A stretch of DNA of 64,000 bases. Origin: Macrostomum hystrix. Lineage: Eukaryota; Animalia; Platyhelminthes. Below the pieces are notes generated by a model. That model was not told the DNA's origin, searched no databases, and saw only the letters and a program-made list of their open reading frames with translations. Where the stretch lies: the NCBI GenBank assembly GCA_950097015.1, contig CATNEN010000003.1, positions 11,656,001-11,720,000 of the forward strand. Direction: 5' to 3'. A program made the position numbers and the translations under genes. Positions 3,001 to 63,451 of the stretch are shown here, piece after piece; within the stretch, counting starts at the first letter, position 1; each line of letters begins with the position of its first letter.

Positions 3001-3123
3001 TTGGGTCAGTTAGAGATTGGGTCAGTTAGAGATTGAGTCAGTTAGAGATTGGGTCAGTTAGAGGATGGGTCAGTTAGAGATTCGGTCAGTTAGAGAATGG
3101 GTCAGTTAGAGATTGGGCCAGTT
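1..3123. repeat. 16-bp satellite (GTTAGAGATTGGGTCA / GTTAGAGATTGTATCA), intronic in SLC1A-like gene A
   Basis: Continuous 16-bp periodicity; ends ~35 bp from the GTGAGT donor at 3158 (-). Confidence 0.98.
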
Positions 3124-3158: not shown

Positions 3159-6100
3159 CAAGTTATGACCCGCACCATCATGCAGCAAGTGTCGTTAATG
3201 GCAACCATCAGGTCAATCAGGTCTCGCGTCTGATTTGACAAGCGTTTAATCACCAAACCGAAGAAAATTGAGAAACTGACGCAAGCTGAATTTGGGGTTG
3301 GGTTGCGCCTTAGTGACAGGCCAATTATGAAACTGAGCACATAAGTAGACTTAAAACTTACCCAGCAAGTTCATATCCTCATATTTATTCGCGATCTGAA
3401 AGAAGTCCTTGGTTTTATCGCTGTATTTTACAGTATATTTTTCTTTGCGAAATGCTGTTTGAAGTAAACCATCTGGGAAAATGTTTCTGAAATGGGGCAC
3501 TTCATGCAGTGAGAATCAAATGATATTATAAGCTGTAAGTTAATCTATTCTTAGTCTACTCTATATTTTAAGCATCAAGGGATTTGAATTGCTAATCTAC
3601 TCCATGCAGAAGGTATCAAGGGATTTGGATTGCTAATCTACTCCATGCAGAAGGTATCAAGGGATTTGGATTGCTAATCTACTCCATGCAGAAGGTATCA
3701 AGGGATTTGGATTGCTAATCTACTCCATGCAGAAGGTATCAAGGGATTTGGATTGCTAATCTACTCCATGCAGAAGGTATCAAGGGATTTGAATTGCTAA
3801 TCTACTCCATGCAGAAGGTATCAAGGGATTTGGATTGCTAATCTACTCCATGCAGAAGGTATCAAGGGATTTGGATTGCTAATCTACTCCATGCAGAAGG
3901 TATCAAGGGATTTGAATTGCTAATCTACTCCATGCAGAAGGTATCAAGGGATTTGGATTGCTAATCTACTCCATGCAGAAGGTATCAAGGGATTTGGATT
4001 GCTAAGCTACTCCATGCAGAAGGTATCAAGGGATTTGAATTGCTAATCTACTCCATGCAGAAGGTATCAAGGGATTTGGATTGCTAATCTACTCCATGCA
4101 GAAGGTATCAAGGGATTTGGATTGCTAATCTACTCCATGCAGAAGGTATCAAGGGATTTGGATTGCTAATCTAATCCATGCAGAAGGTATCAAGGGACTT
4201 TAATTGCTTATCTACTCCATGCAGAAGGTATCAAGGGATTTGGATTGCTAATCTACTCCATGCAGAAGGTATCAAGGGATTTGGATTGCTAATCTACTCC
4301 ATGCAGAAGGTATCAAGTGACTTGGATTGCTAATCTACTCCATGCAGAAGGTCTCAAGGGACTTGGATTGCTAATCTACTCCATGCAGAAGGTCTCAAGG
4401 GACTTGGATTGCTAATCTACTCCATGCAGAAGGTATCAAGGGATTTGGATTGCTAATCTAATCCATGCAGAAGGTATCAAGGGATTTGGATTGCTAATCT
4501 AATCCATGCAGAAGGTATCAAGGGATTTGGATTGCTAATCTACTCCATGCATAGGGGAACAAGGGATTTGGATTGCTAATCTACTCCATGCAGAAGGTAT
4601 CAAGGGATTTGGATTGCTAATCTACTCCATGCAGAAGGTATCAAGGGACTTTAATTGCTTATCTACTTCATGCAGAAGGTATCAAGGGATTTGGATTGCT
4701 AATCTACTCCATGCAGAAGGTATCAAGGGACTTGAATTGCTTATCTACTTCATGCAGAAGGTATCAAGGGATTTGGATTGCTAATCTACTCCATGCAGAA
4801 GGTATCAAGGGATTTGGATTTCTGTTTATTCTAATTGCAGCGAGAATCATCCGATAGTTGGATATGATTTAGAATATATTCTTAACATCAATTTTATTTA
4901 GACAATTCGAAACGCACCGTATTAGGTCCAGCATAGTTTCAAGCGCTTTGCTGTTTTTGCTTTCATCGGTCTCGTAGCCGCTGTTCGGGACCAAATTCTT
5001 CAAGTAATTGTTATTGCCTGGCTGAATAATGACCGTTAGAATGATGCCGATTAACACAGCAGCCAAGCACGAGAAGAAGAAGTATAACAGCATAAAGACA
5101 TAAATCCGGTTCATAGATTTTATGTTCGGATTAGACAACCCTGGAGTTTAAATTTAAAGTGAAAGTGTTGTATCGTGACTTGACTTGAAGTGCGCAGTGT
5201 GGGGCTGCACCCCAATTGTTATTGGCGCTGAGTTTAGGACTGCTTGCTCTCTCCCCGCCTGCTCTGTCAGTCAATGTACGCTTATGCCTAACCGTCTAAT
5301 CTATTAGCTGATGCTTTACTCGTATCTGCATGTACATCTATGTGCAATGCCAACTATAATAAATAACAACCTCTCGCCCATTTGCGGCTCAAGTTTGGCT
5401 AGCCAGCCACGACACGACAATGGCATCGCAAGCAGCCAGTGAATTACCTCTCAGCCAGGCTGAGGCCTGGCTGCAAAGTTTTGAAGCACTGTGCAGGCAC
5501 AAAAAACTGCAATATACAAACGAAGAGAAGCAGGTGACAGACCTCTTCCTTGCTCGAGCAGGAATCAATGCAGTCCGATCCGTCTCTATCATGGCAAAGC
5601 CGAAAAACATTGAGGATATGACCTTCAAGGACATCAAGAAAATGATCATCGGGCGACTCCAGCCCAAAAAGAAACTGGTGATTGCAGAGCGCACAAGGTT
5701 CATGTCCCAGCGGCAGCTGTCAACAGAGTCGGCCCAGCAGTTCGCGGAGCGCTTGAGAGACGCGGCAAAGCACTGTGAGTTTGACAAGCTCAACGAACAA
5801 GGCTGCAAACAGTCAGCCGAGGATGACTTGATCCAAACACTGCTGATCAGCGGCTTATGCGACCGCAGCCAGCGGACCAAAACACTTGAGCACATTCAGA
5901 GCTCTGAGAATCCAGTGACTCTGGACACGTGTCTGCAGTACATCCAGCAGTTAGAGCTCATCCAGAGCTACAGCTCAAGCGACCGATCTGCTGAAGCCCG
6001 AGAGCCTAGCAGAAGCTCCGAGATGGCTGAGAGTTCGACACCAGTTGCCAGCATCGACAGGAACCGCAATAGCGGTGCTCAGTGCAGGTCGTGTGGTCTG

Positions 6101-9100
6101 CAGCACCAGCCAGGCAAATGCCCTGCATTCGGGAAGACTTGTAACAAATGCCACCGCAGGAACCACTTTGCTGCAGTCTGCAGGAGCAGCGCCAAGTCCA
6201 AGTCGGTTGCACATGCCCATGAAATCGACACGAGCGAGTGTGAGCAGGCAGGCATCTACACCATTGTCGGCAACGAGAGCGGCAGCGGCAGCATAAAAAC
6301 TGTGCTCATTGAAGTCAAGCCGTTCAAAATGCAGCTCGACTCTGGATCCGGTGCGAGCATCATTCCGATAAACTTCTGGAGGAGCCTCGGTGAGCCCAAG
6401 CTACGAAAGTCCAAGTTGAGACTGCGACAATTTGACGGAACTAGAACCAGAACTAGAGGATGCTTCACGGCGCTCATCGAAGTCGGGAGACAAATCGCCT
6501 GTGCGGACGTGACGGTCACTGAGTGCACAAAGGAGCACGGCCTCATCGGAACAGACGTGCTGGACTTCAAGCTGGACACAGCGACTGTCAATCAAGTGGA
6601 GCGCAGCAGCAAACCGCTAGGCAAGCTCAAAGGTTTCCGTGCTCGGGTCTTGCTCAGGGAGAATGCTCAGCCCAGCTTTTTCGATGCCCGGCCGCTCCCG
6701 ATTCATCTCAAGCCGCTGGTGGTGGCTAAGCTGCGGACGATGATCGACGCCGGGATCCTCGAGCCTGTGCCGCCAGGCGGCAGCAGGTGGGCATCGCCCA
6801 TTGTAGTGGTGCGCAAGGCCGACGGAGACCTGAGAATCTGCTCCGACTACAAGGTCGGGGTGAACCCGAAGATCTGCTCTGACGCCTACCCACTGCCCAA
6901 CATCGAGCAAGCCTTCAGTGCCCTGGCAGGTATGAAGCACTTCGCAATTGTAGACTTAACAAATGCCTACAACCAGATTGAGCTAGACGAGGCTTCCAGA
7001 GAAATACTCACCATCAAAACGCCCCTAGGCCTGCTCAGATGGACGCGCATGCCATTCGGGGTGAAGACGGCCAGTGCGCAGTTCCAGGCGGCCATGGAGG
7101 CAACGGTCGGCGGTGCGGTCAGCAACCTGGTGATCTACCAAGACGACATGTGCGTTGGCGCCACCACAGCGGACGAATTGGACAGCAAAGTCCGGGACCT
7201 GCTGAGAGCGCTTTCTGATGCCGGCATGTCGATCAACGAAAAAAAATGCGTTTTCCGCAGCACGGAAATCAGTTTCCTTGGCTACCGCATCGCGGCTGAC
7301 GGCGTGCGCCCTGATCGGAAGCTGGTGGAGAAAATACTCGGCGTGAGCACCCCGTCGAGCAAAAAGGAACTCGAATCGTTTCTAGGAATGACGGTGTACT
7401 ACTCGCGCTACATCAAGTCCTACTCGGAGAAGACCGAGCCGCTGACCGAGCTGCGGAGCAAGAAAGTCGCGTTCCATTGGGGACCTCGGCAGCAGAAAGC
7501 GTTTGACGAGCTCAAGCAGGCGCTTGCAGCTTCCCCAGTGGTCCGAATCTTCGATGCAAGAAAGCGCACAACTCTGACTACTGACGCCAGCGAGAAGGCC
7601 ATAGCAGCAATCCTCTCTCAGGACGAGCACCCAGTGATGTACCTGTCAAGGCGGCTGACACCGGCTGAGAGAAATTACTCGAATATCGAGCGAGAGGCCC
7701 TGGCTGTAGTGTGGGCCACTCAGAGAGCCAGACACTTTCTTCTCGGCAGCAAGTTTGTGCTCCAGTGCGATCATCAACCATTGGAGTTCATTTTTAGTCC
7801 GTCTCGGGAGCTTCCAAAGGTCACATAGGCAAGGATCATGCGCTGGGCTTTGCAGCTGTCGGCCTTCGACTACGAAATCTCGTACATCAAGGGCAGCTGC
7901 ATCCCGCATGTCGACGCGCTGTCTCGAATTGAATTCAAGGAGGAAGGCGATGGAGACGACTGCCAGGAAAGCTTCGTTCACTGGACAGAGACGGAGGTGC
8001 TCAAGCTGGAGCAGATCAGAGACGCCACTGACAATGACCCGGTGCTCGCCAGCGTCAAGCGCAGGATCCGCAGCAATGCGTGGAACAACTGCTCGGCAGC
8101 GGAGCGACCGTATAAAGCCGTCCGCCAGCAGCTCTCAGTGGAGAGTGGCGTCGTCTGCCTGAGAGACCTGGTGGTCCCGCCTAGCCGGCTGCGGCAAGAC
8201 GTGCTGCGAGCGGCTCACGGCGACTCGCACTGCGGTGCCCTAGCGACAAGAAATCGACTCAAGCTGGAAGCCTGGTGGCCGGGTCACTGCGAGGACGTCG
8301 AAAACTTCGTCAAGCAATGCCAGCGATGCGCGGAGATCCGTCCAATGCCTGCCAGAACGTGCCACACCTGGCCGGCGGAAAATGGTCCCTGGAGACGCGT
8401 GCACATGGACCATGCTCACGTTCCCGGCTTCGGCCTGCTGCTCATTGTGGTGGACGCCTTCTCCGGCTGGCCGGAAGCGGTGCCTGTGGCCGACAAGAGC
8501 GCGATGACGGTCATCAAGGTGCTCCGCTTGATTTTTTCCCGCCTGGGTGTGCCGCATACCTTGGTGGCGGACAATGCTCCGGAGTTCCGTGACCAGCAGC
8601 TGCACGAGTGGCTCAAGAAGATCGGCTGCTCGCCGATCCACTCGCCGCCGTATCATCCGCAGTCAAACGGGTGCGCCGAGCGCATGGTCCAGACCGTCAA
8701 GAAGGGGCTGCGGGCCTTCGCCGTGCACCAGGGCAGGTTCGACGCGTACCTCGCCAAGCTGCTGCTTAATTACCGGGCCACTCCGCGGGGCGACGGGCGT
8801 GGCAGTCCGTCTGCGCTTATGGGGCGACAGCTGCGAAGTCCGCTGACCCTCCAATTCGACACCGATGCGCCGCTCGTCTACCAGTCGCGACCGGGGGTGC
8901 CGGCTGAGACCGTCCGCTTTGTGGTACAGGCCGGCCACAACACGGCCGTGGTCACCCGGGACAAGGACGACAGGCCTGTGCTGGCACACCGGGATCAGCT
9001 GCGTTTGTGTCCGAGTCCAAGCCGGGCGGAAGTTACGGACAACACTGACGATGGCGGCCGGGATCCTGACGATGCCGGTCGGAGCCCTGACGACGGCGGC

Positions 9101-17179: not shown

Positions 17180-18788
17180 TTACTCGTTCGATTTTCGCTT
17201 TCTCTGCAGCCTTTTTGCCTTTTTCTGCGGCTGCTCCTCGCCAGGTCTCTCAATATCTTGGTCTTGGCGATCTTCACCTTGGTCTTGGCGATCTTCACCT
17301 TGGTCTTGGCGATCTTCACCTTGGTCTTGCCGATCTTCACCTTGGTCTTGCCGATCTTCACCTTGACTTCTCAGCCTCTCAATCTTCTGCTGCATCCACC
17401 CCGGCAGCCGGCACAGCTCGTGAGTGATTCTTCTGCGTAGCCGCCGCAGCAGCTCCAGATCGCCGCAGATCGCCGCAGCAACCAGCAGCTCCTGCTCATC
17501 CGCATCTTCCCTCTGAGCCACATCTCGTATCCAGTCCTGATCGCTCCCGTCTCCTGCTGCTGTCAGCTCATTGCGAAGAGCCCGCAGCAGAGCGTCAAAG
17601 TTCATGTATAAGTATGTGCCGTAGTTCTCCATCCGCAGCGGAAAGCAGTCGGCAAAGACTTCGTGCTCAATCGGCAGCTTCGGTCGCTCGTCAAACACAA
17701 AGCAGAATTTCCAGGCGGAGTCTCGGCTCCTCAGGTGCTGCCACACAAAGTCCGCAGTGGCCTCACTCGCCGACCTCTCAGCTCCCCAATCGATGCCTCT
17801 GCTCGCACTGAACGGCCCGCAGTCGCTCACAACTCTCGCTGCACTGAGTCGGTCGCCGAACTTCAGGCAGGCCAGCGCTCTGAGAGACTGCCGCGCTGAT
17901 CGGGCGCAGTCTGGCAGTTTGTTGATCAGCTCTGCGAGACTCTCTCGGGACTGCTGGCTGCGGTCTCCATCGGACAGACGAAGCACCGACTCTCTCACGA
18001 TGTCGTAGATCTCGTGGAACTCGCATGTCTTGGCTTCTGACACGGGTCTGTCATAGAGTAGAGGCAGGATGAGGAACGGGTGGAAGTGGAATCGGCCCGA
18101 TTTGGTGACGGGTCGCAGACTGTCCTCGAACTGCAGCAGCAGCTGAGGCAGCTCAGCCATGGCGTCTCTCAATGCACCGGCTGCCCGATTCAACGCTTCG
18201 CTCACTCCCTCAGCTGATGTGGGCGACTTCAAGCCTTTCAGGTACACAGCGGCATTGCTCAGGAAGAAGTGCTCCAGGATCCGACCGTCAGGTGTGTCTG
18301 ATCTGCAGCCGCTCTCCACACCGTCAAGCAGCATCTGCAGCGAGCGTCTCGTGAGACTCACGAGATTCTCCGGCTTCCACTGCTCAGCCGGTGTCTCCTC
18401 CAGCATTCGGAACGTGACGGTCTTTGCGTGATAGGACTTGAAGCCGACGTTTGAGATCTTCTTCTTCAGCAGCCACTTGAGTGTGACGAACAGCTGGCCT
18501 TGCAGAGTGCTGAGACTCCGCAGCAGTCGCCTCTCCAGGAAGCTGCTGCTCACTCGGAGCTGCTGGCCCCCATTTCGGGAGGAGCTGCGTGCACCACGTG
18601 ACAGGGCGATGAGGCAGAGGTGAGGTCTCGCTGGAGCGACTGCAGCACGGACTGGGGGATGTTGGAGTCGGAGACTCTTGATGGCTGCAGCGGCTCGATG
18701 GGAGGGTAGCGGCAGAGGCGGCGGGCGATGACTTCGTCCACAGCCGGTCTCAGGGTGGAGCCATCTTGAGTCTTGGCTGGTTTGTCGG
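17180..18788 (-). CDS. Mab-21/cGAS-like C-terminal exon, copy 1; frameshifted by a G5 versus G6 homopolymer
   Basis: 1609 nt against 1610 nt in copy 2: ATGGGGGCC versus ATGGGGGGCC. Ends in (QGEDRQD)5 and a basic tail [11 protein letters not shown]. Confidence 0.88.
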
Positions 18789-21700
18789 CTGGAAAAATGG
18801 GAAATGCGAGAAATATGGAAAATGCCATCAGATTTCAAGTTGATAGACACAAAATATTTCTCGATAATCTAAAAAGGAAAAAATGCAAAGATGGTTTGTA
18901 GCTGCGATTTAAGAAAATAGTGCAGACTAGAAACTTTTGCCCCCTACGGAGGGGAGCACGTGCACGATAATTTTCAATTCTTCCTTGCTTCTTTAGATTC
19001 TTATGGGTATTTTTCCTGAGCACTGTATACAGCTCTTCAGTCCATGTATTGGGGAGGTCACCAGCTCACTCAAATTTCTACTGTAACCTTCAGCTGGCTG
19101 AACTGAATAAATACGAGGTTATGATTCTAGCTCTTGGACAAGCATCGTTTCCTCAGGCTGAGATTCGAACTCCCGGCGTCTCTGCCAGAAGCTTCCAAGC
19201 TGTACTAATAATATTTATAGCATAAGAGTGGATGCATTCAACTTAGAAAGTGAAAGTTTACTTAAGAGGGACCACGAAAAATGATATAATTAAGTTAGAA
19301 CTCCTTGAGTGTCAAGTTACAATGTGACTATTGCAAAGCTGCAATCATTTGGTCAGTGTCGCAGAAATGGGCCGAATGGGTTAATCTTCAGATGTAGCCA
19401 ATCGGCGGGGTTTTCCTGCCAACTTAAAATAGGAAAATTTTCCTATCTACTGGATAACTAGCTTCTATATTGCTTGTAAGAATGGGCTGTTCGGAGTATT
19501 GTTGAAAATCAATGGACATGTACTGGCATAATTAAAGAATCACAGAGAAAGAATTTTGTAAAAACGGCAAAAGAATATAATAGATTAGAAATCACAGAAA
19601 TTTGCAATGACGCTTCCAAAAGCTGTGTACAACGGTTCAGTCCATGGACTGGGGAGGTCACCTCAGAAACTGTAATTTTAACTCGTATACGTTTGCTTCT
19701 ACCCGTTTTACTGGCTGCTGAATTGGAAACTTTCAGCTTTTAGGAACTTTCGTTTTGCCGTTCAAAGAGGAATTTCCCAAATCAGGTTCACAACTTATTA
19801 CTTTAATTTTACACACGTGACTGTGAAAGTATTGCGAGCCTAAGAAACAAAGACAAACTTTGCTTCTCTTCACTGAGTACACTGAGCGATGAGCGCTAAG
19901 CCTCTGTTTGGTTCGCAGAAGAAGTGAAATCGGCTATAAAAACAAACTTTATATTTTTGCTTTGAACTTTCTTGCTCTGGCTCTGGATTTCAAACCTGGA
20001 CTGAGCATTTGTTTGTTTTCCTTGTTTGTTGTTTGCTTTAGAAAGCCAAAGAGGATCAGCAGGCCAAACACATGCTCAATTCTTGTCCCAGCCATCCCGA
20101 CAGTCTCTGGCAGGAAATTCTCACCGAATCCGGAGCTCAGGATGTGGCCATTGCTGAGCTCCACTGTCTGAGCAGCCTCCACTCGGTCGCACTCGCACAC
20201 ATCTCTCGGGTGAATCGGCCTTCCTGGAATCAGCTGAATAACATCGATGTCAGAGTCGATGTCAGTTCCGCCATCCAGAGAGACCAGGCTGTTGCCCCAG
20301 GCCTCAGAGAAGCTGCCCACAGCGAACCAGCCGTCATCGTTCATTCTCTTCCTGAGAACATCCTGCAAGACGTCAGCCACAGCGATCTGCAAGGCGGCTC
20401 TGAAGTCCACGAATCCCGACTGAGAGAGCTTGGAGTGCAGCTGCTGGCTCAGCTCTGCGTCGCTGGGTGCGGCTCTGAAGGGTGAGAGGAGGCGGCAGTG
20501 CTGAGTTTCAGTGAGGCTGGGAGGCTCTGAAGGGTGAGAGGAGGCGGCAGTGCTGAGTTTCTGCACTGCAAAAGTGAAAAAAAAAATAAAATTAAATAAT
20601 TAAGAAAATTTTGAAAATATTTTGTAGGCTGTGCTTTTGCGAATGATACACTACGGAGTCAAAAGGTGTCACTTTCAAAAAACCCAAATCCATAATCCAA
20701 TATTTAATTCCTGCAATATATAATCCCAAATCTGTTTTTAAAAATACCAAACTTATAATATTGCATTCCAAACCTGTTCTATTGCATCCCAAAACTTTAA
20801 TATTGCTTCCCTGACATGTAATCTAGAATTCGACGCATGAAAAAATTGCATCCCAAGCTGTAATATTGTATCCCAAGCTGTAATATTGCATCCCAATCTG
20901 TAATATTGCATCCCAATCTGTAATATTGTATCCCAATCTGTAATATTGCATCCCAATCTGTAATATTGTATCACAAGCTGTAATATTGCATCCCAATCTG
21001 TAATATTGCATCCCAATCTGTAATATTGTATCCCAATCTGTAATATTGCATCCCAATCTGTAATATTGTATCACAAGCTGTAATATTGCATCCCAATCTG
21101 TAATATTGCATCCCAATCTGTAATATTGCATCCCAATCTGTAATATTGCATCCCAAGCTGTAATATTGCATCCCAAGCTGTAATATTGCATCCCAATCTG
21201 TAATATTGCATCCCAATCTGTAATATTGCATCCCAATCTGTAATATTGCATCCCAATCTGTAATATTGCATCCCAATCTGTAATATTGTATCACAAGCTG
21301 TAATATTGCATCCCAATCTGTAATATTGCATCCCAAGCTGTAATATTGCATCTCAAACCTGTAATATTGCATCCCAAGCTGTAATATTGCATCCCAAGGA
21401 ATAACATTGAATCTCTAACCAAGGACCACTGGAATACGTCGTTCTAGTATAGTAGTCCTTGTCCCTAACCTGTAGTATTACATCCCAAACCTGTAATTTT
21501 TTCCTCCAAAATCAAATCCCACATTCATAAACTGAGACTTAGGATAAATTCTTAAACTGGAGCCCATTCCGCTGTATTGGCAACTAAGCATGTTGAACAA
21601 GTTGAAAGATTATTAGCTCGTATTCAATTAAATAAAAACTGAAATTCTTTAAAAAATGTTTTTCACGAGGTTTTTACAGATTTTTACAAGGGGATAGCAG

Positions 21701-23851
21701 AGCACCTTTTTCTTCACGGATTTTGTGACTGTGTCCAACTGGAGGTGGATCAACTCAAGGCTTATCAAGGCTCATCTATTAGCATTAGTTTCCGTATTTC
21801 TTCGATTTCTTTCAAGCTGAATTTGTCAACATTCGATTCGACATTTTTCATTTTTCAATTCTGTAGCAAAAATATGTTAAGCTCTTGAGAACGAAACCGC
21901 TCGGAAATTAGACTTTTGTCTTCTTTGTTTAATAATCAAATTAATTAAATACATTAATAAAATAAGTTTCTTATATTTCTCTTTAGCCTTACGATTTATT
22001 TATCAGTACATACAACATACCCTGCTAATGTTACGAGTAATAATGGTACGCTCGTATGAAGATCAACTTTTCAGGACACAAGCTTATATAGTTCATAGCA
22101 GCAACATATGTAATAATACCAAAAGAAGAGCTTTGGATCTGCTTTAAATAAGAACGGTTACCATTAAAATTTTAGGGTGAAAAACTGAAGTGTATCTCCG
22201 TAGTGTATACATTTATTTTTAATCTACAATAACTGACTGACGCACAATCAGTTTGCAACATCGGTTCTCAGATTTCGAATCTAATAGCTCAGAGCACGCT
22301 GGCTGCGAATTGATTTTCAAAATGTCTCTGAAAACGGATTGCTCAGGTCAGTTTTACAGGAAACAGGAGCTCCTACCTGTTCTGCTTCTCAGGCAAAGGC
22401 GCGGAGGATCCACGGCTCAGCAGGTCAACCACTCGGTCATGGCCGACTTTCGTGGCGATTCGCAGAGCAGCTTCCAGCAAGTCCGGGCGCTGAACGACTT
22501 TCATGAGTGACTCGACAACACGGAGGTGGCCGTTCTGTGATGCAATGTAGAGAGGTGAGGAACCATCGAATGCTTGAAGATTGACGTCGGCTCGTGCTTT
22601 GATGAGTGAGTCGACCACCTCCTTATGGCCATTTTGTGATGCAATGTACAGAGGTGAGCAGCCATCGACTCCTTGAAGATTGACGTCGGCTCGTGCATTG
22701 ATGAGTGATTCGACCACCTCCTTATGGCCATTTTGTGATGCAATGTAGAGAGGTGAGGAGCCAGTTTTTCTTTGAAGATTGACGTCGGCTCGTGCTTTGA
22801 TGAGTGATTCGACCACCTCCTTATGGCCATTTTTTGATGCAATGTAGAGAGGTGAGCAGCCATCAAATGCTTGAAGATTGACGTCGGCTCGTGCTTTGAT
22901 GAGTGATTCGACCACCTCCTTATGGCCATTTTGTGATGCAATGTAGAGAGGTGAGGAGCCAGTTTTTCTTTGAAGATTGACGTCGGCTCGTGCTTTGATG
23001 AGTGATTCGACCACCTCCTTATGGCCATTTTGTGATGCAATGTAGAGAGGTGAGGAGCCAGTTTTTCTTTGAAGATTGACGTCGGCTCGTGCTTTGATGA
23101 GTGATTCGACCACCTCCTTATGGCCATTTTGTGATGCAATGTAGAGAGGTGAGGAGCCATCGACTTCTTGAAGATTGACTTTGGCTCGTGCATTGATGAG
23201 TGAGTCGACCACCTCCTTATGGCCATTTTGTGATGCAATGTAGAGAGGTGAGGAGCCAGTTTTTCTTTGAAGATTGACTTTGGCTCGTGCATTGATGAGT
23301 GAGTCGACCACCTCCTTATGGCCATTTTGTGATGCAATGTAGAGAGGTGAGGAGCCATCGACTTCTTGAAGATTGACTTTGGCTCCTGCATTGATGAGTG
23401 AGTCGACCACCTCCTTATGGCCTTGCTGTGATGCAATGTAGAGAGGTGAGGAGCCAGTATTTGTTCGAAGATTGACGTCGGCTCGTGCTTTGATGAGTGA
23501 TTTCACCAGTCGGTGGTGACCATATGCAGATGCAATCCACAATGCTGTCGCCCCTCTCCAGTTCTGCTTATCTACATCCGCATTGGCTCGGATGAGTCTC
23601 ACCAGAATTTCATGTCTTCCTAATCGGCAAGCGAGCATTGCTGGAGTATAAAATGAGTCTTCATAGGCGATGAAGGCATCGAGGCTCCCGCCGCTGACAA
23701 TGAAACGCTCAACGACCTCCACTCGGTCACCTCTGATGGCTGCCAGCAGCTCTTCGTCGGTGAGTTCTGCGTCTTCTTGCTGCTCTGAGGAATGAACTGA
23801 GTTCATCAGGTACACCAGGACAGCCGTGAGTATTCTCAGCAAGGGAAACAT
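17180..23851 (-). CDS. Predicted ankyrin-repeat + Mab-21/cGAS-like nucleotidyltransferase (cGLR) fusion, ~1158 aa; exons 22377-23851, 20125-20516, 17180-18788 (1-nt frameshift near 18570 in this copy)
   Basis: The ANK ORF ends exactly at the donor AG|GTAGG (phase 2). The acceptor CCTCCCAG|C at 20517 is in frame. Exon 2 carries AVGSFSE...DIDSDIDV and the donor G|GTGAG. Exon 3 starts after TTTTCCAG and carries [26 protein letters not shown] and LEHFFL, typical of Mab-21 domains. Confidence 0.75.
20125..20516 (-). CDS. cGLR nucleotidyltransferase catalytic exon
   Basis: [33 protein letters not shown] is a Pol-beta-superfamily GS...DhD motif. Confidence 0.85.
20845..21398. repeat. 20-bp minisatellite (TAATATTGCATCCCAATCTG), in the ANK-cGLR intron
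   Basis: 20-bp period. Confidence 0.96.
22373..23851 (-). CDS. Ankyrin-repeat exon (~13 repeats, 10 nearly identical at DNA level) with hydrophobic N-terminus
   Basis: 33-aa repeats [30 protein letters not shown]; 99-bp DNA period; N-terminus [21 protein letters not shown]. Confidence 0.95.
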   Translation of the reverse strand: MFPLLRILTAVLVYLMNSVHSSEQQEDAELTDEELLAAIRGDRVEVVERFIVSGGSLDAFIAYEDSFYTPAMLACRLGRHEILVRLIRANADVDKQNWRGATALWIASAYGHHRLVKSLIKARADVNLRTNTGSSPLYIASQQGHKEVVDSLINAGAKVNLQEVDGSSPLYIASQNGHKEVVDSLINARAKVNLQRKTGSSPLYIASQNGHKEVVDSLINARAKVNLQEVDGSSPLYIASQNGHKEVVESLIKARADVNLQRKTGSSPLYIASQNGHKEVVESLIKARADVNLQRKTGSSPLYIASQNGHKEVVESLIKARADVNLQAFDGCSPLYIASKNGHKEVVESLIKARADVNLQRKTGSSPLYIASQNGHKEVVESLINARADVNLQGVDGCSPLYIASQNGHKEVVDSLIKARADVNLQAFDGSSPLYIASQNGHLRVVESLMKVVQRPDLLEAALRIATKVGHDRVVDLLSRGSSAPLPEKQNR

Positions 23852-24002
23852 TTTGCAGGTGTCTGCTTGTGGGTTGGGAAAGTGGCAAATAAGGTCGAGT
23901 AGGTCAGCTCAGCCTTTGGCTTGAGACTTTGCTTTTGCTGTCCGCAGCAGCCAACCAGAAGCGTTCTTTGCTGCTGAAGTCTCATTGGGTGCTGAGCTGC
24001 TC

Positions 24003-25596
24003 AGAGAAGAGAAGACGAGAAGAGAAGAGGAGAAGAGAAGAGGAGAAGAGAAGAGAAGAGGAGAAGAGAAGATAAGAGAAGAGAAGAGAAGAGAAGAGAA
24101 GAGAAGAGAAGAGAAGAGAAGAGAAGAGAAGAGAAGAGAAGAGAAGAAGAGAAGAGAAGAGAAGAGGAGAAGAGGAGAGGAGAGAAGAGAAGAGAAGAGA
24201 ATAGAAGAAGAGAAGAGAAGAGAAGAGAAGAGAAAAGAAGAGAAGAGAAGAGAAGAGAAGAGAAGAAGAGAAGAGAAGAGAAGAGGAGAAGAGGAGAGGA
24301 GAGAAGAGAAGAGAAGAGAATAGAAGAAGAGAAGAGAAGAGAAGAGAAGAGAAGAGAAGAGAAGAGAAAAGAAAAGAAGAGAAGAGAAGAGAAGAGAAGA
24401 GAAGAAGAGAAGAGAAGAGAAGAGGAGAAGAGGAGAGGAGAGAAGAGAAGAGAAGAGAATAGAAGAAGAGAAGAGAAGAGAAGAGAAGAGAAGAGAAGAG
24501 AAGAGAAAAAAAAAGAAGAGGAGAAGAGAAAAGGAGAGAAGAGAAGAGAAGAGAAGAGAAGAGAAGAGAAGAGAAGAGAAGAGAAGAGAAAAGAAGAGAA
24601 GAGAAGAAGAGAAGAGAAGAGAAGAAGAGAAGAGAAGAGAAGAGAAGAGAAGAGAAGAGAAGAGAAGAGAAGAGAAGAGAAGAGAAAAGAAAAGAAGAGG
24701 AGAAGAGAAAAGGAGAGAAGAGGAGAGGAGAAGAGAAGAGGAGAAGAGAAGAGGAGAAGAGAAGAGGAGAGAAGAGGAGAAGAGAAGAGAAGAGGAGAAG
24801 AGGAGAAGAGAAGAGAAGACAAGAGAAAAGAAGAGAAGAGAAGAGAAGAGGAGAGAAGAGGAGAAGAGAAGAGAAGAGGAGAAGAGGAGAAGAGAAGAGA
24901 AGAGAAGAGAAGAAGAGAAGAGAAGAGAAGAGAAGAAGAGAAGAGGAGAGAAGAGAAGAAGAGAAGAGAAGAGGAGAAGAGAAGAGAAGAGAAGAGAAGA
25001 GAAGAAGAGAAGAGAAGAGAAGAGAAGAGAAGAGAAGAGAAGAGAAGAGAAGAGAAGAGAAGAGAAGAAGAGAAGAGAAGAGAAGAGAAGAAGAGAAGAG
25101 GAGAGAAGAGAAGAAGAGAAGAGAAGAGGAGAAGAGAAGAGAAGAGAAGAGAAGAGAAGAAGAGAAGAGAAGAGAAGAGAAGAGAAGAGAAGAGAAGAGA
25201 AGAGGAGAGGAGAGAAGAGAAGAGAAGAGAATAGAAGAAGAGAAGAGAAGAGAAGAGAAGAGAAGAGAAGAGAAGAGAAAAGAAAAGAAGAGAAGAGAAG
25301 AGAAGAGAAGAGAAGAAGAGAAGAGAAGAGAAGAGGAGAAGAGGAGAGGAGAGAAGAGAAGAGAAGAGAATAGAAGAAGAGAAGAGAAGAGAAGAGAAGA
25401 GAAGAGAAGAGAAGAGAAAAGAAAAGAAGAGGAGAAGAGAAAAGGAGAGAAGAGAAGAGAAGAGAAGAGAAGAGAAGAGAAGAGAAGAGAAGAGAAGAGA
25501 AAAGAAGAGAAGAGAAGAAGAGAAGAGAAGAGAAGAAGAGAAGAGAAGAGAAGAGAAGAGAAGAGAAGAGAAGAGAAGAGAAGAAGAGGAGAAGAG
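24003..25596. repeat. (AAGAG)n polypurine microsatellite, ~1.6 kb
   Basis: Almost exclusively A/G. Confidence 0.98.
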
Positions 25597-27049
25597 GAGT
25601 GATTCTTCTGCGCAGCCGCCGCAGCAGCTCCAGATCTCCGCAGATCGCCGCAGCAACCAGCAGCTCCTGCTTATCCGCATCCTCCGTCTGAGCCACATCC
25701 CGTATCCAGTCCTGATCGCTCCCGTCTCCTGCTGCTGTCAGATAATTGCGAAGAGCCCGCAGCAGAGCGTCAAAGTTCAGGTAGAAGTAGTTGCCGTAGT
25801 TCTTCATCTGAGACAGAAAGCAGCCGGCAAAGACTTCGTGTTCAATCGGCAGCTTCGGTCGCTTGTAAAACTCGAAGCAAAATTTCCAGGCGGAGTCTCG
25901 GCTCCTCAGGTGCTGCCACACAAAGTCCGCAGTGGCCTCACTTGCCGACCTCTCAGCCCCCCAATCGATGCCTCTGCTCGCACTGAACGGCCCGCAGTCG
26001 CTCACAACTCTCCGGCTTCCGAGATTCTCCGGCTTCCACTGCTCAGCCGGTGTCTCCTCCAGCATTCGGAACGTGACGGTCTTTGCGTGATAGGACTTGA
26101 AGCCGACGTTTGAGATCTTCTTCTTCAGCAGCCACTTGAGTGTGACGAACAGCTGGCCTTGCAGAGTGCTGAGACTCCGCAGCAGTCGCCTCTCCAGGAA
26201 GCTGCTGCTCACTCGGAGCTGCTGGCCCCCCATTCCGGGAGGAGCTGCGTGCACCACGTGACAGGGCGATGAGGCAGAGGTGAGGTCTCGCCTGAGCGAC
26301 TGCAGCACGGACTGGGGGATGTTGGAGTTGGAGACTCTTGGTGGCGGCGGGCGTCGACTCGGTCCACAGCCGGTCTCAGGGCCCAGCCTCTTTGAGTCCA
26401 GGCTGGGTTGGAGGCTGGAGAAATGGGAAATGCGAGAAACATTGCAAATTCCATCAGATTTCAATTAGAAACAAAACTAATTTTCAATTGTATTTCATGT
26501 CTGTTGTCTGATGTAAAGAAATAGAAATAAAACAAAATTTAGAAACTTTTGCCCTTTCTCAAAGAGGGACAAAGAGCAACTCGAATGAATCGTCTGGGCT
26601 CCCCGAAGATGGGCAACCATTGCTAGTTAAATAACAGTTTATAGCTAATGTGCAGGATTCATGCAAAGTGGCACGAGCAACAACTCCTGTCAATGAGTGA
26701 TTTAAGTGCAACAAAGAATATGATATTAGATTTTGGCGTATAAAAATCAATAAGTACAATGAATGAATATAGTATCATTATTCACTGAGTTCACTGAGCG
26801 ATGAGCACTAAGCCTCTGTTTGGTTCCCAGAGGAAGCGCGCCGAAAGAAAAATCACACTTTATTTGCGAAATTTCTTGCTCTGGCTCGGATTTTTAAATC
26901 TGGACTGAACATTTGCTTGTTTTCCTTGTTTGTTGTTTGCTTTAGAAAGCCAAAGAAGATGAGCAAGCCAAACATATGCTCAATTCTTGTCCCAGCCATC
27001 CCGACAGTCTCTGGCAGGAAATTCTCACCGAATCCGGAGCTCAGGATGT
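25597..27049 (-). pseudogene. Third, decayed cGLR copy (exon remnants 27025-27049 and 25597-26414)
   Basis: Homologous to 17430-18788 and to the 19870-20144 intron/exon junction. Has a frameshifting deletion after ARR, a ~0.5-kb deletion between KPENL and RVVSD, and a 3' end replaced by (AAGAG)n. Confidence 0.88.
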
Positions 27050-35200: not shown

Positions 35201-38200
35201 CGCGATGCAGTGGTGCAGGTTCAGCTGCAGGAAGCTCACCCCAGGAGGGGCGGTCCGTGCGGCTATCTGCTGGCCTACGGCGAGTTGTTCAGGAGCGATT
35301 CCTCGTCCTCGCCGGTGTTTTGCCCGAGCTCCATCGGTTCCTCCTGAATCGGATCCAGAGTTGAGGCCGGGGCTGCCGCAACAGCGGCGTCCGTGTCCTC
35401 AACCCGGTTTTCCGCCGGGGGTTCCGATGAAGTATTGGGCCGGGTGGTGCTGCGGTGGCGTCCACTGTTGGGGTCCGACAGCTGTCTGGCGCGCTGAGTC
35501 AAGCCAGCACGGATGGTGTTACGGGCGGGTTTCCGGCCCTTACCACGTCCGCCTGTCGTTGCGGCTCGCGCGGCTTTGCCCCTGATAGGGTCCGCATCCT
35601 CGGAGTGGTCGTGACGATCAGGAGTCTGTGTTCCAGGGCGCAGGGGCCCGGCAGAGCTCTGGTTCGTCCGTTTCCGCTTTTCCGGGGGCGGCGGGCGAGT
35701 GGCGTCGGACTCGAAGCTGAAAATCTGCATTCGAGTGAGGCCTGCACTGATGTAGGACATGTCTGGGCAGCGGAGCATCCAGCTGTCCGACAATCCTAGG
35801 ATGGCCGTGAAACCGTCTCCACCAGGTCTGGTGATGGTTTCATGAACCACGACACCGTTTGCTGGCAGATCCGGGTGGATTGCCAACAGCAGGCGGCGCA
35901 GTTCTCCGGCGTTGGTGATGGCGCTGCGAGCTGGAATCCAAACACGATGACGGTGTGTCTGGGGGCGCTCGTCCTCCCTGTAGATAAACAGGTTGCCCAT
36001 TTCCGTGCCCCAGTCGAAGGATTTCAGCATCTCGAGGAGTTGCTGTCCGGACTGGTTGTCGGCAGGCTGGACAATGAGGGCTTGGTCCTGGATGTCGGTC
36101 TTCAGGACGTGCAGTACAGTGCCGCTCAGTGCCAGTTTGACCAGATGGGAGTCCAATCTGCGCCAGATCTGGTCGAGTTGCGCTGTTGTGAGGGGCGTCT
36201 CCTGGCCTCGGATAACCAAGGCCGGCTGCCTCTTTGCCATAGCAGCGTAAGTGCGCTTTGGCCTTGTGGTTTGGCCGGCGCCTCCCGCAACGGGCCCCCC
36301 AGCAGTCGTCGGAGTTTCCGGATGACTGTGAGAGGTTCCGCCGCGAGAGGAACCGGATGCCCCAGAGGCCTGGGCGGCACTTTTCCGCGCTTCCGGGTTT
36401 CCCGGACGGCGCGAGGAGTCCGCCTCCTTGTTGGGTGCCGGTTCCTCCGCGATGTTCGCAGAGTTGCCGGCCCCCTCCTCGGAGGCGGTGGTTGGCGCGG
36501 ATTTCGCAGCCAACCGTACTTCCTGTTTTCGCCGCCGGAATTCCTGGAGGCGGGCGAGGCTGCGGGCTTGCGTGGAAGGGGAGCGTTTGCTCTTTGATCC
36601 AGCCGCTCTGGTGTTTTCCTGAGTGGCGGAGGAGCAGGATGAATTTTGGGCGCCGGTGGAACCGGTGTCGCCCTGGCGCTGGTCCTGAGGATCTGCGTCG
36701 CCGGCCGGGGTCGGCGTTTCAGCAGGGTCCTGGGACGTGCTGGAGCTGTAGTGGGACTCCATAGGTCGCTGGAAAAAGAGAAAGAAGAGAATAAAAATAA
36801 AAACCGCTAATGGCCGGATAGACTCCCCGGACCTTTCAGCCCCTCAGCGCGGTGAGACCTTAGGCATAAGAGGACACCTAAAGCAGTGCCAGGCCCGCAG
36901 ACTGGCTGCGTACCCTGTTGAGGTCGAAGGGTGACACCTGTCCCTCAGAGCCGTAGCCAGAGGTACCTGATCACGCACAGGTGCACGAGCGCTGCGGACT
37001 GGCCGCATACCCTGTTAAGGTCAAAGGGTGACACCCTTCCCTCAGAGCCGTAGCCAGAGGTACCTGATCACGCACAGGTGCGCGAGACGCTGCGGACTGG
37101 CCGCATACCCTGTTAAGGTCAAAGGGTGACACCTTTCCCTCAGAGCCGTAGCCAGAGGTACCTGATCACGCACAGGTGCACGAAAACTGCGGACTGGCCG
37201 CATACCCTGTTAAGGTCAAAGGGTGACACCTTTCCCTCAGAGCCGTAGCCAGAGGTACCTGATCACGCACAGGTGCGCGAGACGCTGCGGACTGGCCGCA
37301 TACCCTGTCAAGGTCAAAGGGTAAACACCTCTCCCTCAGAGCCGTAGCCAGAGGTACCTGATCACGCACAGGTGCGCGAGACGCTGCGGACTGGCCGCAT
37401 ACCCTGTCAAGGTCAAAGGGTAACACCTCTCCCTCAGAGCCGTAGCCAGAGGTACCTGATCACGCACAGGTGCACGAAAGCTGCGGACTCGCCGCATACC
37501 CTGTTAAGGTCAAAGGGTGACACCTTTCCCTCCAGCCAGGGCTAGAGGTACCCAGTTTGGCCAGAGGCCCTGGATGGGTCATCCAGCGCTGTAGCCCATT
37601 CTAACAGGTGACACTCCAGTCTAACAGGTGACACTCCAGTCTAACAGGTGACACTCCAGTCTAACAGGTGACACTCCAGTCTAACGGGCGACACTCTGGT
37701 CTAACAGGTGACACCCTCATCTAATAAGTGACACTCTCGTCTAGCAGGTGACACCCTCGTCTAACAGGTGACACCCTCGTCTAACAGGTGACACCCTCGT
37801 CTAGCAGGTGACACCCTCGTCTAACAGGTGACACCCTCGTCTAACAGGTGACACCCTCGTCTAACAGGTGACACCCTCGTCTAACAGGTGAAACCCTCGT
37901 CTAACAGGTGACACTTTAGTCTAACAGGTGACACTTTAGTCTAACAGGTAACACTCTGGTCTAGCAGTGACACTGCTCAATGGTTTCTTGCTCAATTTCT
38001 CAATTTCCAATGTAGTTTTTATCAGTAACGAGAACACCCCAACCGGTGTGTACCTTGGTTTAGTGAGGTGAGAGGTTAGATCGAAGTTTAAATAGCAACC
38101 TTTGAAAACGTTGCATTAAAATATGATAAGCTTGAAATGAATTTTTCTACGACTCATACGCTTGAGTCAGTTGTGGTTTAGGTTGGTTATGTATGAGTTC

Positions 38201-53988: not shown

Positions 53989-54097
53989 TTACAGTTGTAC
54001 GCTGGGACGCAGCACTATTGATTATGCCATTGTGTCCATAGACAGTTTTTAATTCAAACAAACACATAAAACAAGGCACTCCCAAATCCTCCCAGAG

Positions 54098-56417
54098 CCT
54101 CACAATGACCTCCCCACTCACTCACCAACCACCCAGATCCTCACAATGGCCTCTCAACTCACTCACCAACCACCCAGATCCTCACAATGGCCTCTCTACT
54201 CACTCACCAACCACCCAGATCCTCACAATGGCCTCTCTACTCACTCACCAACCACCCAGATCATCACAATGGCCTCTCTACTCACTCACCAACCACCCAG
54301 ATCCTCACAATGGCCTCTCTACTCACTCACCAACCACCCAGATCCTCACAATGGCCTCTCTACTCACTCACCAACCACCCAGATCCTCACAATGGCCTCT
54401 CTACTCACTCACCAACCACCCAGATCCTCACAATGGCCTCTCTACTCACTCACCAACCACCCAGATCCTCACAATGGCCTCTCAACTCACTCACCAACCA
54501 CCCAGATCCTCACAATGGCCTCTCTACTCACTCACCAACCACCCAGATCCTCACAATGGCCTCTCTACTCACTCACCAACCACCCAGATCATCACAATGG
54601 CCTCTCTACTCACTCACCAACCACCCAGATCCTCACAATGGCCTCTCTGCTCACTCACCAACCACCCAGATCCTCACAATGGCCTCTCTACTCACTCACC
54701 AACCACCCAGATCCTCACAATGGCCTCTCTACTCACTCACCAACCACCCAGATCCTCACAATGGCCTCTCTACTCACTCACCAACCACCCAGATCCTCAC
54801 AATGGCCTCTCTACTCACTCACCAACCACCCAGATCATCACAATGGCCTCTCTACTCACTCACCAACCACCCAGATCCTCACAATGGCATCTCAACTCAC
54901 TCACCAACCACCCAGATCCTCACAATGGCCTCTCTACTCACTCAACAACCACCCAGATCCTCACAATGGCATCTCTACTCACTCACCAACCACCCAGATC
55001 CTCACAATGGCCTCTCTACTCACTCACCAACCACCCAGATCCTCACAATGTCCTCTCTACTCACTCAACAACCACCCAGATCCTCACAATGGCATCTCTA
55101 CTCACTCACCAACCACCCAGATCATCACAATGGCATCTCTACTCACTCACCAACCACCCAGATCATCACAATGGCCTCTCTACTCACTCACCAACCACCC
55201 AGATCATCACAATGGCCTCTCAACTCACTCACCAACCACCCAGATCATCACAATGGCATCTCTACTCACTCACCAACCACCCAGATCCTCACAATGGCCT
55301 CTCTACTCACTCACCAACCACCCAGATCCTCACAATGTCCTCTCTACTCACTCAACAACCACCCAGATCCTCACAATGGCATCTCTACTCACTCACCAAC
55401 CACCCAGATCATCACAATGGCATCTCTACTCACTCACCAACCACCCAGATCATCACAATGGCCTCTCTACTCACTCACCAACCACCCAGATCATCACAAT
55501 GGCCTCTCTACTCACTCACCAACCACCCAGATCCTCACAATGGCATCTCTACTCACTCACCAACCACCCAGATCATCACAATGGCCTCTCTACTCACTCA
55601 CCAACCACCCAGATCCTCACAATGGCATCTCTACTCACTCACCAACCACCCAGATCATCACAATGGCATCTCTACTCACTCACCAACCACCCAGATCATC
55701 ACAATGGCATCTCTACTCACTCACCAACCACCCAGATCCTCACAATGGCATCTCTACTCACTCACCAACCACCCAGATCCTCACAATGGCCTCTCTACTC
55801 ACTCACCAACCACCCAGATCCTCACAATGGCATCTCTACTCACTCACCAACCACCCAGATCATCACAATGGCATCTCTACTCACTCACCAACCACCCAGA
55901 TCATCACAATGGCATCTCTACTCACTCACCAACCACCCAGATCCTCACAATGGCATCTCTACTCACTCACCAACCACCCAGATCCTCACAATGGCCTCTC
56001 TACTCACTCACCAACCACCCAGATCATCACAATGGCATCTCTACTCACTCACCAACCACCCAGATCCTCACAATGGCATCTCTACTCACTCACCAACCAC
56101 CCAGATCATCACAATGGCCTCTCTACTCACTCACCAACCACCCAGATCCTCACAATGGCCTCTCTACTCACTCACCAACCACCCAGATCCTCACAATGGC
56201 CTCTCTACTCACTCACCAACCACCCAGATCCTCACAATGGCCTCTCTACTCACTCACCAACCACCCAGATCCTCACAATGGCATCTCTACTCACTCACCA
56301 ACCACCCAGATCCTCACAATGTCCTCTCTACTCACTCACCAACCACCCAGATCCTCACAATGGCATCTCTACTCACTCACCAACCACCCAGATCATAATA
56401 ATGGCCTCCCAACTCAC
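54098..56417. repeat. 41-bp minisatellite B, copy 2 (~56 copies)
   Basis: Same unit as 13253-13686; produces three spurious ~750-aa ORFs. Confidence 0.97.
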
Positions 56418-61841: not shown

Positions 61842-63451
61842 TTACTCGTTCGATTTTCGCTTTCTCTGCAGCCTTTTTGCCTTTTTCTGCGGCTGCTCCT
61901 CGCCAGGTCTCTCAATATCTTGGTCTTGGCGATCTTCACCTTGGTCTTGGCGATCTTCACCTTGGTCTTGGCGATCTTCACCTTGGTCTTGGCGATCTTC
62001 ACCTTGGTCTTGCCGATCTTCACCTTGACTTCTCAGCCTCTCAATCTTCTGCTGCATCCACCCCGGCAGCCGGCACAGCTCGTGAGTGATTCTTCTGCGT
62101 AGCCGCCGCAGCAGCTCCAGATCGCCGCAGATCGCCGCAGCAACCAGCAGCTCCTGCTCATCCGCATCTTCCCTCTGAGCCACATCTCGTATCCAGTCCT
62201 GATCGCTCCCGTCTCCTGCACCTGTCAGCTCATTGCGAAGAGCCCGCAGCAGAGCGTCAAAGTTCATGTATAAGTATGTGCCGTAGTTCTCCATCCGCAG
62301 CGGAAAGCAGTCGGCAAAGACTTCGTGCTCAATCGGCAGCTTCGGTCGCTCGTCAAACACAAAGCAGAATTTCCAGGCGGAGTCTCGGCTCCTCAGGTGC
62401 TGCCACACAAAGTCCGCAGTGGCCTCACTCGCCGACCTCTCAACTCCCCAATCGATGCCTCTGCTCGCACTGAACGGCCCGCAGTCGCTCACAACTCTCG
62501 CTGCAGTGAGTCGGTCGCCAAACTTCAGGCAGGCCAGCGCTCTGAGAGACTGCCGCGCTGATCGGGCGCAGTCTGGCAGTTTGTTGATCAGCTCTGCGAG
62601 ACTCTCTCGGGACTGCTGGCTGCGGTCTCCATCGGACAGACGACGCACCGACTCTCTCACAATGTCATAGATCTCGTGGAACTCGCATGTCTTGGCTTTT
62701 GACACGGGTCGGTCAATTAGAGTCGGCAGGATGAGGAACGGGTGGAAGTGGAATCGGCCCGAGTCGGTGACGGGTCGCAGACTGTCCTCGAACTGCAACA
62801 GCAGCTGAGGCAGCTCAGCCATGGCGCCTCTCAATGCACCGGCTGCCCGATTCAACGCTTCGCTCACTCTCTTAGCTGATGTGGGCGACTTCAAGCCTTT
62901 CAGGTACACAGCAGCATCGCTCAGGAAGAAGTGCTCCAGGATCCGACCGTCAGGTGTGTCTGATCTGCAGCCGCTCTCCACACCGTCAAGCAGCATCTGC
63001 AGCGAGTGTCTCGTGAGACTCACGAGATTCTCCGGCTTCCACTGCTCAGCCGGTGTCTCCTCCAGCATTCGGAACGTGACGGTCTTTGCGTGATAGGACT
63101 TGAAGCCGACGTTTGAGATCTTCTTCTTCAGCAGCCACTTGAGTGTGACGAACAGCTGGCCTTGCAGAGTGCTGAGACTCCGCAGCAGTCGCCTCTCCAG
63201 GAAGCTGCTGCTCACTCGGAGCTGCTGGCCCCCCATTCCGGGAGGAGCTGCGTGCACCACGTGACAGGGCGATGAGGCAGAGGTGAGGTCTCGCTGGAGT
63301 GACTGCAGCACGGACTGGGGGATGTTGGACTTGGAGACTCTTGGTGGCTGCAGCGGCGCGATGGGAGGGTAGCGACAGAGGCGACGGGCGGTGACTCGGT
63401 CCACAGCCGGTCTCAGGGTGGAGCCATTCAGAGTGTAGGCTGGGTTGGAGG
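61842..63451 (-). CDS. Mab-21/cGAS-like C-terminal exon, copy 2 (open frame; upstream exons beyond the window)
   Basis: Acceptor TTTCTCCAG|CC at 63452; uninterrupted frame with [24 protein letters not shown] and LEHFFL. Confidence 0.9.

Follow-up and report, generated by a model that had tools for sequence, protein, structure and literature searches.

The 64,000-nt stretch of the Macrostomum hystrix genome analyzed here (GenBank assembly GCA_950097015.1, contig CATNEN010000003.1, positions 11,656,001 to 11,720,000; hereafter the window) carries a gene copy that very likely belongs to a flatworm family which is lineage-specific and has expanded massively. Genes of this family are composed of three coding exons, which combine an N-terminal array of ankyrin (ANK) repeats with a cGAS-like receptor (cGLR) and a family-specific C-terminal domain. 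cGLRs are recently recognized animal pattern-recognition receptors, most of which are still orphans. The fusion of the ANK array with the nucleotidyltransferase (NTase) of the cGLR is supported at the family level by conserved intron phases, by a paralogue in which both parts share one continuous open reading frame (ORF), by gene models of Macrostomum lignano and by a cGAS-like fold in a modeled homologue. The copy in the window, as assembled, carries a -1 frameshift in exon 3 and is probably a very young pseudogene.

Gene structure and splice sites

The whole gene lies on the minus strand of the window on contig C3 and consists of three coding blocks (Table 1; positions refer to the window unless a contig is named). 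Exon 1 is contained in an ANK ORF of 492 codons (22373-23851, minus strand), of which the TAG stop (22373-22375) falls inside the exon 1 donor site; this donor is conserved among near paralogues. Exon 2 is located within a 205-codon ORF (19949-20566, minus strand) and the Mab-21 part is carried by a 556-codon ORF (17180-18850, minus strand). The four splice sites through which the original prediction joined these frames were all recovered, with 22377 (AG/GTAGG) and 20125 (G/GTGAG) as last exon bases and 20516 (CCCAG/C) and 18788 (TTCCAG/CC) as first exon bases. Junction 1 is in phase 2 and junction 2 in phase 1. Some stronger-looking acceptors occur just upstream of exon 2, none of which is phase-matched to the exon 1 donor. 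The sequence motifs listed in the same prediction are also present, namely GS (20312-20317), D-I-D (20243-20251), AVD (Asp at 18736-18738), (QGEDRQD)5 (17261-17365) and a basic tail (17183-17260).

A frameshift in exon 3 of the assembled copy

The original prediction described the product of the three joined ORFs as a single protein of ~1158 aa. The gene as assembled does not encode this product, since a -1 frameshift, which had been overlooked, interrupts exon 3. Beyond junction 2, the frame of exons 1 and 2 continues in a 92-aa ORF (18550-18828) and not in the long Mab-21 ORF. The first 73 codons of exon 3 are genuinely read in this 92-codon frame, which encodes the third catalytic Asp and in which homology to every paralogue and to the Macrostomum lignano proteins is found. 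Frame B across 18566-18787 was considered as coding sequence and ruled out, as no relative shows homology to it. The Mab-21 helical part is shifted by a single base relative to the upstream frame, and the exon lengths (1475 + 392 + 1606 = 3473 nt) do not add up to a multiple of 3. An intact ORF through both enzyme lobes is thereby interrupted in this copy at 18567-18571, and the predicted product as assembled is a protein of ~701 aa that comprises the ANK array and the N-terminal half of the enzyme, without the helical lobe.

The comparison set for the frame and for intron 2 consisted of 22 copies, taken from 20 loci and the window, with identities down to 53%. The distance between the two parts of exon 3 amounts to whole codons in 21/21 other copies (20 loci) and to 2 nt here. 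A neighboring degraded copy also has six G residues (G6) at the frameshift site, where the window copy has five (G5).

We regard it as probable that G5 is a genuine lesion and that this copy is a very young pseudogene. It is, however, quite possible that this copy is intact, with the complete ANK-cGLR of 1158 aa as its product, in which case G5 would be a homopolymer assembly error for a true G6. No stop codon interrupts the 461 codons downstream of the shift, which share 97% identity with the in-frame sister copy, the ratio of nonsynonymous to synonymous substitution rates (dN/dS) of this part is ~0.5 versus paralogues, thus giving no sign of decay, and a one-base homopolymer difference is a typical residual error in long-read assemblies. 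Conversely, a run of five bases is short for a consensus homopolymer error, every one of the 21 other copies of the same assembly is in frame at this site, and other members of the cluster are visibly degraded, so that gene death is common here. The practical value of this copy is a caution: frame integrity should be checked before copies are counted or expressed.

The enzyme part has a predicted cGAS-like fold and active site

The structure was predicted for P0007, a natural M. lignano homologue of 598 aa that shares 50-65% identity with this copy across its three pieces. The AlphaFold2 model of P0007 has a predicted local distance difference test score (pLDDT) of 89.3 and a predicted template modeling score of 0.90. 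The top matches of this model in Foldseek are all cGAS (probability 1.0). With VIA-align, model residues 1-322 align with cGAS 163-521 with a Z-score of 18.4 and a root-mean-square deviation of 3.4 Å over 255 aligned residues, and Z-scores of 18.1 to oyster Cv-cGLR1 and 17.7 to human MB21D2 were obtained. A superposition on cGAS had been proposed as a check of the original prediction; at the level of the fold, the alignment showed a bilobed cGAS-type architecture for this homologue.

In the P0007 model, GS closes β1, D-I-D opens β2 and A-V-D is located in the next core strand (119-128). The corresponding catalytic residues are kept in the window copy (GS as above; Asp codons 20249-20251 and 20243-20245 in D-I-D; the third Asp in exon 3). 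The cGLR active-site motif of Li et al. 2023 and Slavik et al. 2021 reportedly reads h-G-S, 8-20 residues, [DE]-h-[DE]-h, 50-90 residues and h-[DE]-h. The window copy shows this pattern as V-G-S, 20 residues and D-I-D-V in exon 2, then A-V-D-E in the first part of exon 3 (exon 3a; the second part is referred to as exon 3b). A family profile was also searched against the PDB sequences. When ANK proteins were included, the search was swamped by ankyrin matches and it was redone without them; the ANK-free profile matches only cGLR1, cGAS and MAB21L1 (best E=5.7e-5, for cGLR1).

At the level of Pfam, two relatives score above the Mab-21_C (PF20266) cut-off of 24.1 bits (P0004 with 25.0 bits, P0023 with 28.1 bits), and exon 2 and exon 3a searched singly gave no Pfam match. 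A family-specific domain of ~250 residues is located C-terminal to the catalytic part; a search of the ESM Atlas with this C-terminal domain gave scores of ~0.8 to other Mab-21_C clusters and no usable lead. The net charge of the enzyme is near-neutral to acidic (-8.9, -0.1 and ~+4 for its three pieces), and nucleic-acid-sensing cGLRs have isoelectric points >8.5 (Li et al. 2023, PMC9980059).

It is unlikely, in our view, that the NTase fold acts as a non-enzymatic Mab21-type scaffold, i.e. that it senses ligands or serves as an adaptor and passes its signal on through contacts between proteins instead of a nucleotide messenger. Such a role would fit the absence of flatworm enzymes among the cGLRs found active by Li et al. 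2023 and the Asn that replaces the third Asp in at least one paralogue (L002). Yet this copy and 10/11 near paralogues retain GS, D-x-D and the third Asp, as do the distant paralogues L012, L016 and L017 and the aligned M. lignano homologues. The genome also holds a co-expanded family of candidate STING-domain genes, and the published screen tested nucleic-acid ligands only, on constructs that begin at the NTase in the sequences listed.

Conservation of the fusion among paralogues and in Macrostomum lignano

The fusion of an ANK array with a cGAS-like NTase, as originally proposed, holds for the family; for this copy, no full-length protein is encoded as assembled. Intron 2 is a phase 1 intron (GTGAG...CAG) that interrupts the same codon position in 22/22 copies compared, with a length of 71-116 nt in the majority of the distant ones. 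Intron 1 is in phase 2 with identical donor and acceptor in near paralogues; it measures only 64-330 nt in most paralogues versus 1860 nt in this copy, and in L001 and L010 its sequence differs right up to the acceptor. In the majority of the distant paralogues, the ANK ORF stop lies inside a consensus GT donor (G/TAA, G/TGA or G/TAG), which is followed by a short intron and a phase-matched acceptor. At locus L013 (G000:C11:3664400-3674399; oriented 5528-6884), a single uninterrupted ORF covers both the ANK repeats and exon 2 of the NTase. This paralogue has lost intron 1 and is DNA-level proof of the fusion.

A protein search yielded 114 matches among 1.84 billion representatives, many of which are 1100-1200 aa long with the NTase at approximately residues 500-1100. 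An N-terminal ANK array was found in 8/9 scanned relatives. All named relatives of the family belong to M. lignano, with identities ≤68%, and a homologue search with exon 3b returned only M. lignano proteins, with none of the present species in the protein collection. The M. lignano proteins are contiguous across the position of intron 2, and many transcript-derived M. lignano ORFs continue from the ANK array into the NTase. The gene models of this species were built from RNA-seq transcript assemblies (StringTie/TACO/TBONE/TransDecoder; PMC5730564). An ANK array and a cGLR in one polypeptide are thus established for the family, and for the window copy we infer the corresponding splicing from the conserved junctions.

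It is highly improbable that the ANK ORF and the NTase are separate products in a merely conserved neighborhood, with an ANK mRNA ending near 22373 or an NTase mRNA started by spliced-leader trans-splicing upstream of exon 2: Macrostomum does trans-splice many mRNAs, polycistronic precursors occur, NTase-only M. lignano models exist (P0007 with 598 aa, P0013, P0014 and P0126), even in a cluster that holds an ANK-bearing member of 1082 aa, and the acceptor CCCAG/C has a weak pyrimidine tract, but the phase-2 donor overlapping the ANK stop and its phase-matched acceptor are kept down to 53% identity, L013 is a single-ORF paralogue and many transcript-derived M. lignano ORFs span both parts.

The ankyrin array and the N-terminus

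Exon 1 matches Ank_2 (PF12796; E=4.4e-115) and Ank (PF00023; E=7e-96) in Pfam. The array consists of 11 ankyrin repeats in an exact 33-aa register, and these tandem repeats score above threshold, as expected for an ankyrin-repeat protein. The repeats of this copy differ from each other mostly in the three residues that precede the conserved Gly. Among the near copies that keep the family N-terminus, the ANK ORF ranges from 427 to 658 aa and the number of repeats differs.

A short hydrophobic or amphipathic helix (23800-23851, minus strand) precedes the ANK array in many, not all, family members. The same helix is found at the ANK ORF starts of L004-L012, L014 and L020 and of the M. lignano proteins P0006 and P0022, and might serve as membrane anchor, as a signal-like segment or to cap the array. 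The alignment of the L001 ANK exon begins only at residue 18 of exon 1 of this copy; the N-terminal hydrophobic segment of L001 may be altered or lost.

Sequence variation among copies

The enzyme core is almost invariant among the 12 near copies (L001-L011 and this copy) save for a few hypervariable columns, which carry 4-8 different residues. Residues 60 and 62 of exon 2, just before β1 (20329-20338), show up to six different residues, and residues 5, 7 and 8 of exon 3a, in the loop after 'SNPA' (18763-18774), show up to eight. The residue after the catalytic Asp is hypervariable as well. The dN/dS exceeds 1 in exon 3a versus four near copies that are free of alignment problems and in exon 2 in the three comparisons that have synonymous change, in both cases over few sites, and is ~0.5 in exon 3b versus near copies. 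The exon 3b values of L009 and L011 were disregarded as an artefact of ungapped comparison across an indel.

Two kinds of C-terminal tail were observed in near-identical paralogues. The tail is either Cys-rich and ends in CCRCCVCL (L008 and L009) or basic and ends in [NV]E (this copy, L001-L004 and L006). The Cys-rich tail resembles a CaaX/palmitoylation signal and the basic tail a nuclear localization signal (NLS), a sequence resemblance that hints at distinct destinations within the cell. Paralogues also differ in how many QGEDRQD repeats they have.

Copy number and genomic neighborhood

At least 97 exon 3b matches and at least 143 exon 2 matches of the family were found in the 220-Mb genome. 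A local cluster of at least three copies had been predicted, and exon 3 indeed recurs at C3:11630317, C3:11673183 (this copy) and C3:11717845. These exon 3 copies are 43-45 kb apart and mark the units of a tandem array, each of which also contains a degraded fragment. In the next unit, exon 2 and the ANK exon of L001 lie beyond the end of the window.

Elsewhere, in L019 (G000:C1:23580300-23590299), a 10-kb span contains two diverged ANK-cGLR genes on opposite strands in head-to-head orientation. In the near paralogue L002 (G000:C3:11166100-11176099), the third catalytic Asp is changed to Asn (AVN for AVD) and the 4 kb upstream of it showed no ANK exon; judged by its sequence, L002 has probably lost activity or is in decay.

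Large satellite or tandem-repeat blocks are present in the cluster units (window 1-3120, 38196-43340, 49430-50818, 54077-56418, 20753-21372 and 23985-25700). They comprise a G-rich array offset in ~16-nt steps, arrays with periods of 65 and 41 nt, the tandem repeat of intron 1 and an extended purine/pyrimidine microsatellite, and they account for the pronounced steps of GC skew along the composition profile.

Candidate STING-domain genes elsewhere in the genome

The genome search for paralogues and STING homologues that accompanied the original prediction as a proposed check yielded, besides the large family described above, ~12 diverged candidate STING-domain genes. With Pfam STING_LBD (PF15009), a single match of 25 bits was found, versus a cut-off of 27. 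This gene has ~12 paralogues, eight of which are clustered on contig C2 at 8.97-9.10 Mb. Sequence and profile searches of the STING-domain candidate against the PDB returned STING only (profile E ~1e-3). The model of the candidate is of low confidence (pLDDT 56), and its top 50 Foldseek matches are all STING ligand-binding domains, with template modeling scores of 0.5-0.6. A search for homologous proteins with the STING candidate gave no match.

Table 1. Positions of the gene copy, its frameshift and neighboring copies in the window, and of candidate STING-domain genes on other contigs
Feature	Position	Strand	Description
Coding exon 1	22377..23851	-	ATG at 23851; hydrophobic N-terminal helix, ankyrin repeats, capping helices; phase-2 end AG/GTAGG
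Intron 1	20517..22376	-	1860 nt; tandem repeat block ~20753-21372
Coding exon 2	20125..20516	-	1 + 390 + 1 nt; linker, spine helix, β1 with GS, β2 with D-I-D
Intron 2	18789..20124	-	Phase 1, GTGAG...CAG
Exon 3, first part (frame A; exon 3a)	18568..18788	-	Hypervariable loop, strand with predicted third catalytic Asp (AVD, 18736-18738), then 10-residue segment
Exon 3, second part (frame B; exon 3b)	17183..18565	-	461 open codons; Mab-21 helical domain, ~250-aa family-specific C-terminal domain, (QGEDRQD)5, basic tail; stop 17180-17182
G5 run, -1 frameshift site	18567..18571	-	G6 in 10/11 near paralogues; 21/21 other copies in frame
TGA ending the frame of exons 1-2-3 as assembled	18550..18552	-	Product ~701 aa
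Degraded partial exon 3 copy	25634..26335	-	Internal deletions; then long microsatellite ~23985-25700
Exon 3 of the copy in the next tandem unit (L001)	61845..63446	-	97% identical protein, in frame (G6); exon 2 and ANK exon beyond window end
Candidate STING-domain cluster	G000:C2:8967261-9105035		L021-L026
Further candidate STING-domain paralogues	C39:4228060-4254083; C39:19157985-19158617; C38:7495203-7495865; C7:13141615-13142574		

Interpretation

The assignment of the gene to a three-exon ANK-cGLR family has to be set against several points that weigh against it. The modeled structure is that of a homologue with 50-65% identity and would apply to this protein by extension. Exon 3b reaches 19.1 bits on Mab-21_C (PF20266), which is below the cut-off of 24.1, and a search of this copy with Mab-21 (PF03281), one of the proposed checks, gave no match. 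The M. lignano models P0007, P0013 and P0014 have no ANK array, so that ANK-less isoforms or genes also exist. For the window copy, the splicing is deduced from its splice sites and the G5 run is read from the assembled sequence alone. Enzymatic activity of the family is predicted from the fold and the catalytic residues, and the 15 active enzymes described by Li et al. 2023 are from insects, anemones, molluscs, hydras and corals, with none from a flatworm (PMC9980059). Taken with the evidence above, these points leave the membership of the gene in the family very likely. ANK-cGLR is the appropriate label, and the original interpretation, which extends to second-messenger synthesis and a possible protein ligand, is partly supported.

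Second-messenger synthesis and a protein ligand may be proposed. In intact paralogues, the ANK array and the hypervariable loops on the enzyme core would bind a ligand or partner, probably not a nucleic acid, and this binding would control the NTase. The NTase would then make a cyclic oligonucleotide, which could be read by the diverged putative STING-domain proteins encoded elsewhere in the genome.

A broader, rather doubtful reading is that Macrostomum possesses a germline repertoire of >100 ANK-cGLR sensors that detect proteins or other non-nucleic-acid ligands via their ANK arrays and are paired with co-expanded, soluble and diverged STING-domain proteins. As parts of the same doubtful reading, specificity might be diversified by ankyrin hairpin 'codes', by repeat number and by hypervariable loops of the enzyme core, and the alternative tails (poly-Cys/CaaX or basic and NLS-like) might route paralogues to different compartments. 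If true, this would represent a cGLR-STING immune system that is complete yet unconventional, in a phylum from which it is said to have largely disappeared. The family suits a search for non-nucleic-acid ligands, especially because the constructs of the published screen, in the sequences listed, begin after the ANK arrays. With ~100+ ANK-fused copies, localized hypervariability and a co-expanded STING-like family, it would be a good system for such ligands of cGLRs.

Comparison with known systems

cGLRs have been defined across animals, with ANK-cGLR listed as one of the architecture classes (Li et al. 2023, bioRxiv 10.1101/2023.02.22.529553 / PMC9980059). In the same work most platyhelminths are stated to lack cGLRs, and many cGLRs are described as appearing inactive for want of the right ligand. 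Table S2 contains M. lignano proteins with N-terminal Ank_2, and the catalogued ANK-cGLRs there include M. lignano PAA86972.1, PAA68676.1, PAA67649.1 and PAA58690.1 as well as Stylophora pistillata entries (PMC9980059). Five M. lignano members were part of the screen of 140 proteins, which used nucleic-acid ligands only, and their listed sequences begin at the NTase domain (Li et al. 2023, PMC9980059); as listed, all five plainly belong to the family described here. In the supplementary portions covered, the accessions of the closest M. lignano relatives do not appear and other family members do (PMC9980059). Our literature search retrieved no paper that discusses Macrostomum cGLRs in its text. 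The ANK-cGLR design is hence already known, having been catalogued in 2023, and this copy adds little to it.

The catalogued ANK-cGLRs of Li et al. 2023 share with the window copy, as far as the listed entries extend, the family and the layout, i.e. an N-terminal Ank_2 array followed by a cGLR, and the motifs GSF[SA]E[AG]WGNSL, then D-x-D, then LR[VF]S.SFLER and QGQ.F. They differ in that the M. lignano members come from another species with ≤68% identity to this family copy, which is itself frameshifted. In the portions covered, the catalogue gives neither gene structure nor copy-number analysis nor ANK function.

The ANK array resembles designed ankyrin repeat proteins (DARPins) and ankyrin-1 in its near-identical 33-aa repeats. 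Variation is found mostly at the β-turn positions before the conserved Gly, which correspond to DARPin positions 1-3 and 5. No variation is seen at DARPin positions 13 and 14, the binding positions of helix 1. The turns of this copy use just four 'codes' (EVD, RKT, AFD and GVD), and any binding by the array is predicted.

Cv-cGLR1 (8GJW), Drosophila-type cGLR1 (8GJY) and human MB21D2 (7LT1) are structurally similar to the family to a comparable degree, judged by the Z-scores given above for Cv-cGLR1 and MB21D2. In contrast to the flatworm fusion proteins, they are single-domain enzymes, with double-stranded RNA or double-stranded DNA as ligand where this is known.

The likeness to vertebrate cGAS (PDB 4K98, 7FTR) in the homologue model consists of a bilobed fold of NTase and Mab-21 helical lobes, for which the Z-score of 18.4 extends over the whole catalytic domain, and of a GS activation-loop motif with three predicted catalytic acidic residues on equivalent strands. 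Sequence identity, however, is only ~15-20%, the spacing from D-x-D to the third Asp is ~55 residues in the flatworm family versus ~90 in cGAS, and a zinc-thumb was not identified in the flatworm family. The flatworm enzyme is near-neutral to acidic and not basic. It has an extra C-terminal domain of ~250 aa, and at its N-terminus the ANK array takes the place of the disordered basic tail of cGAS.

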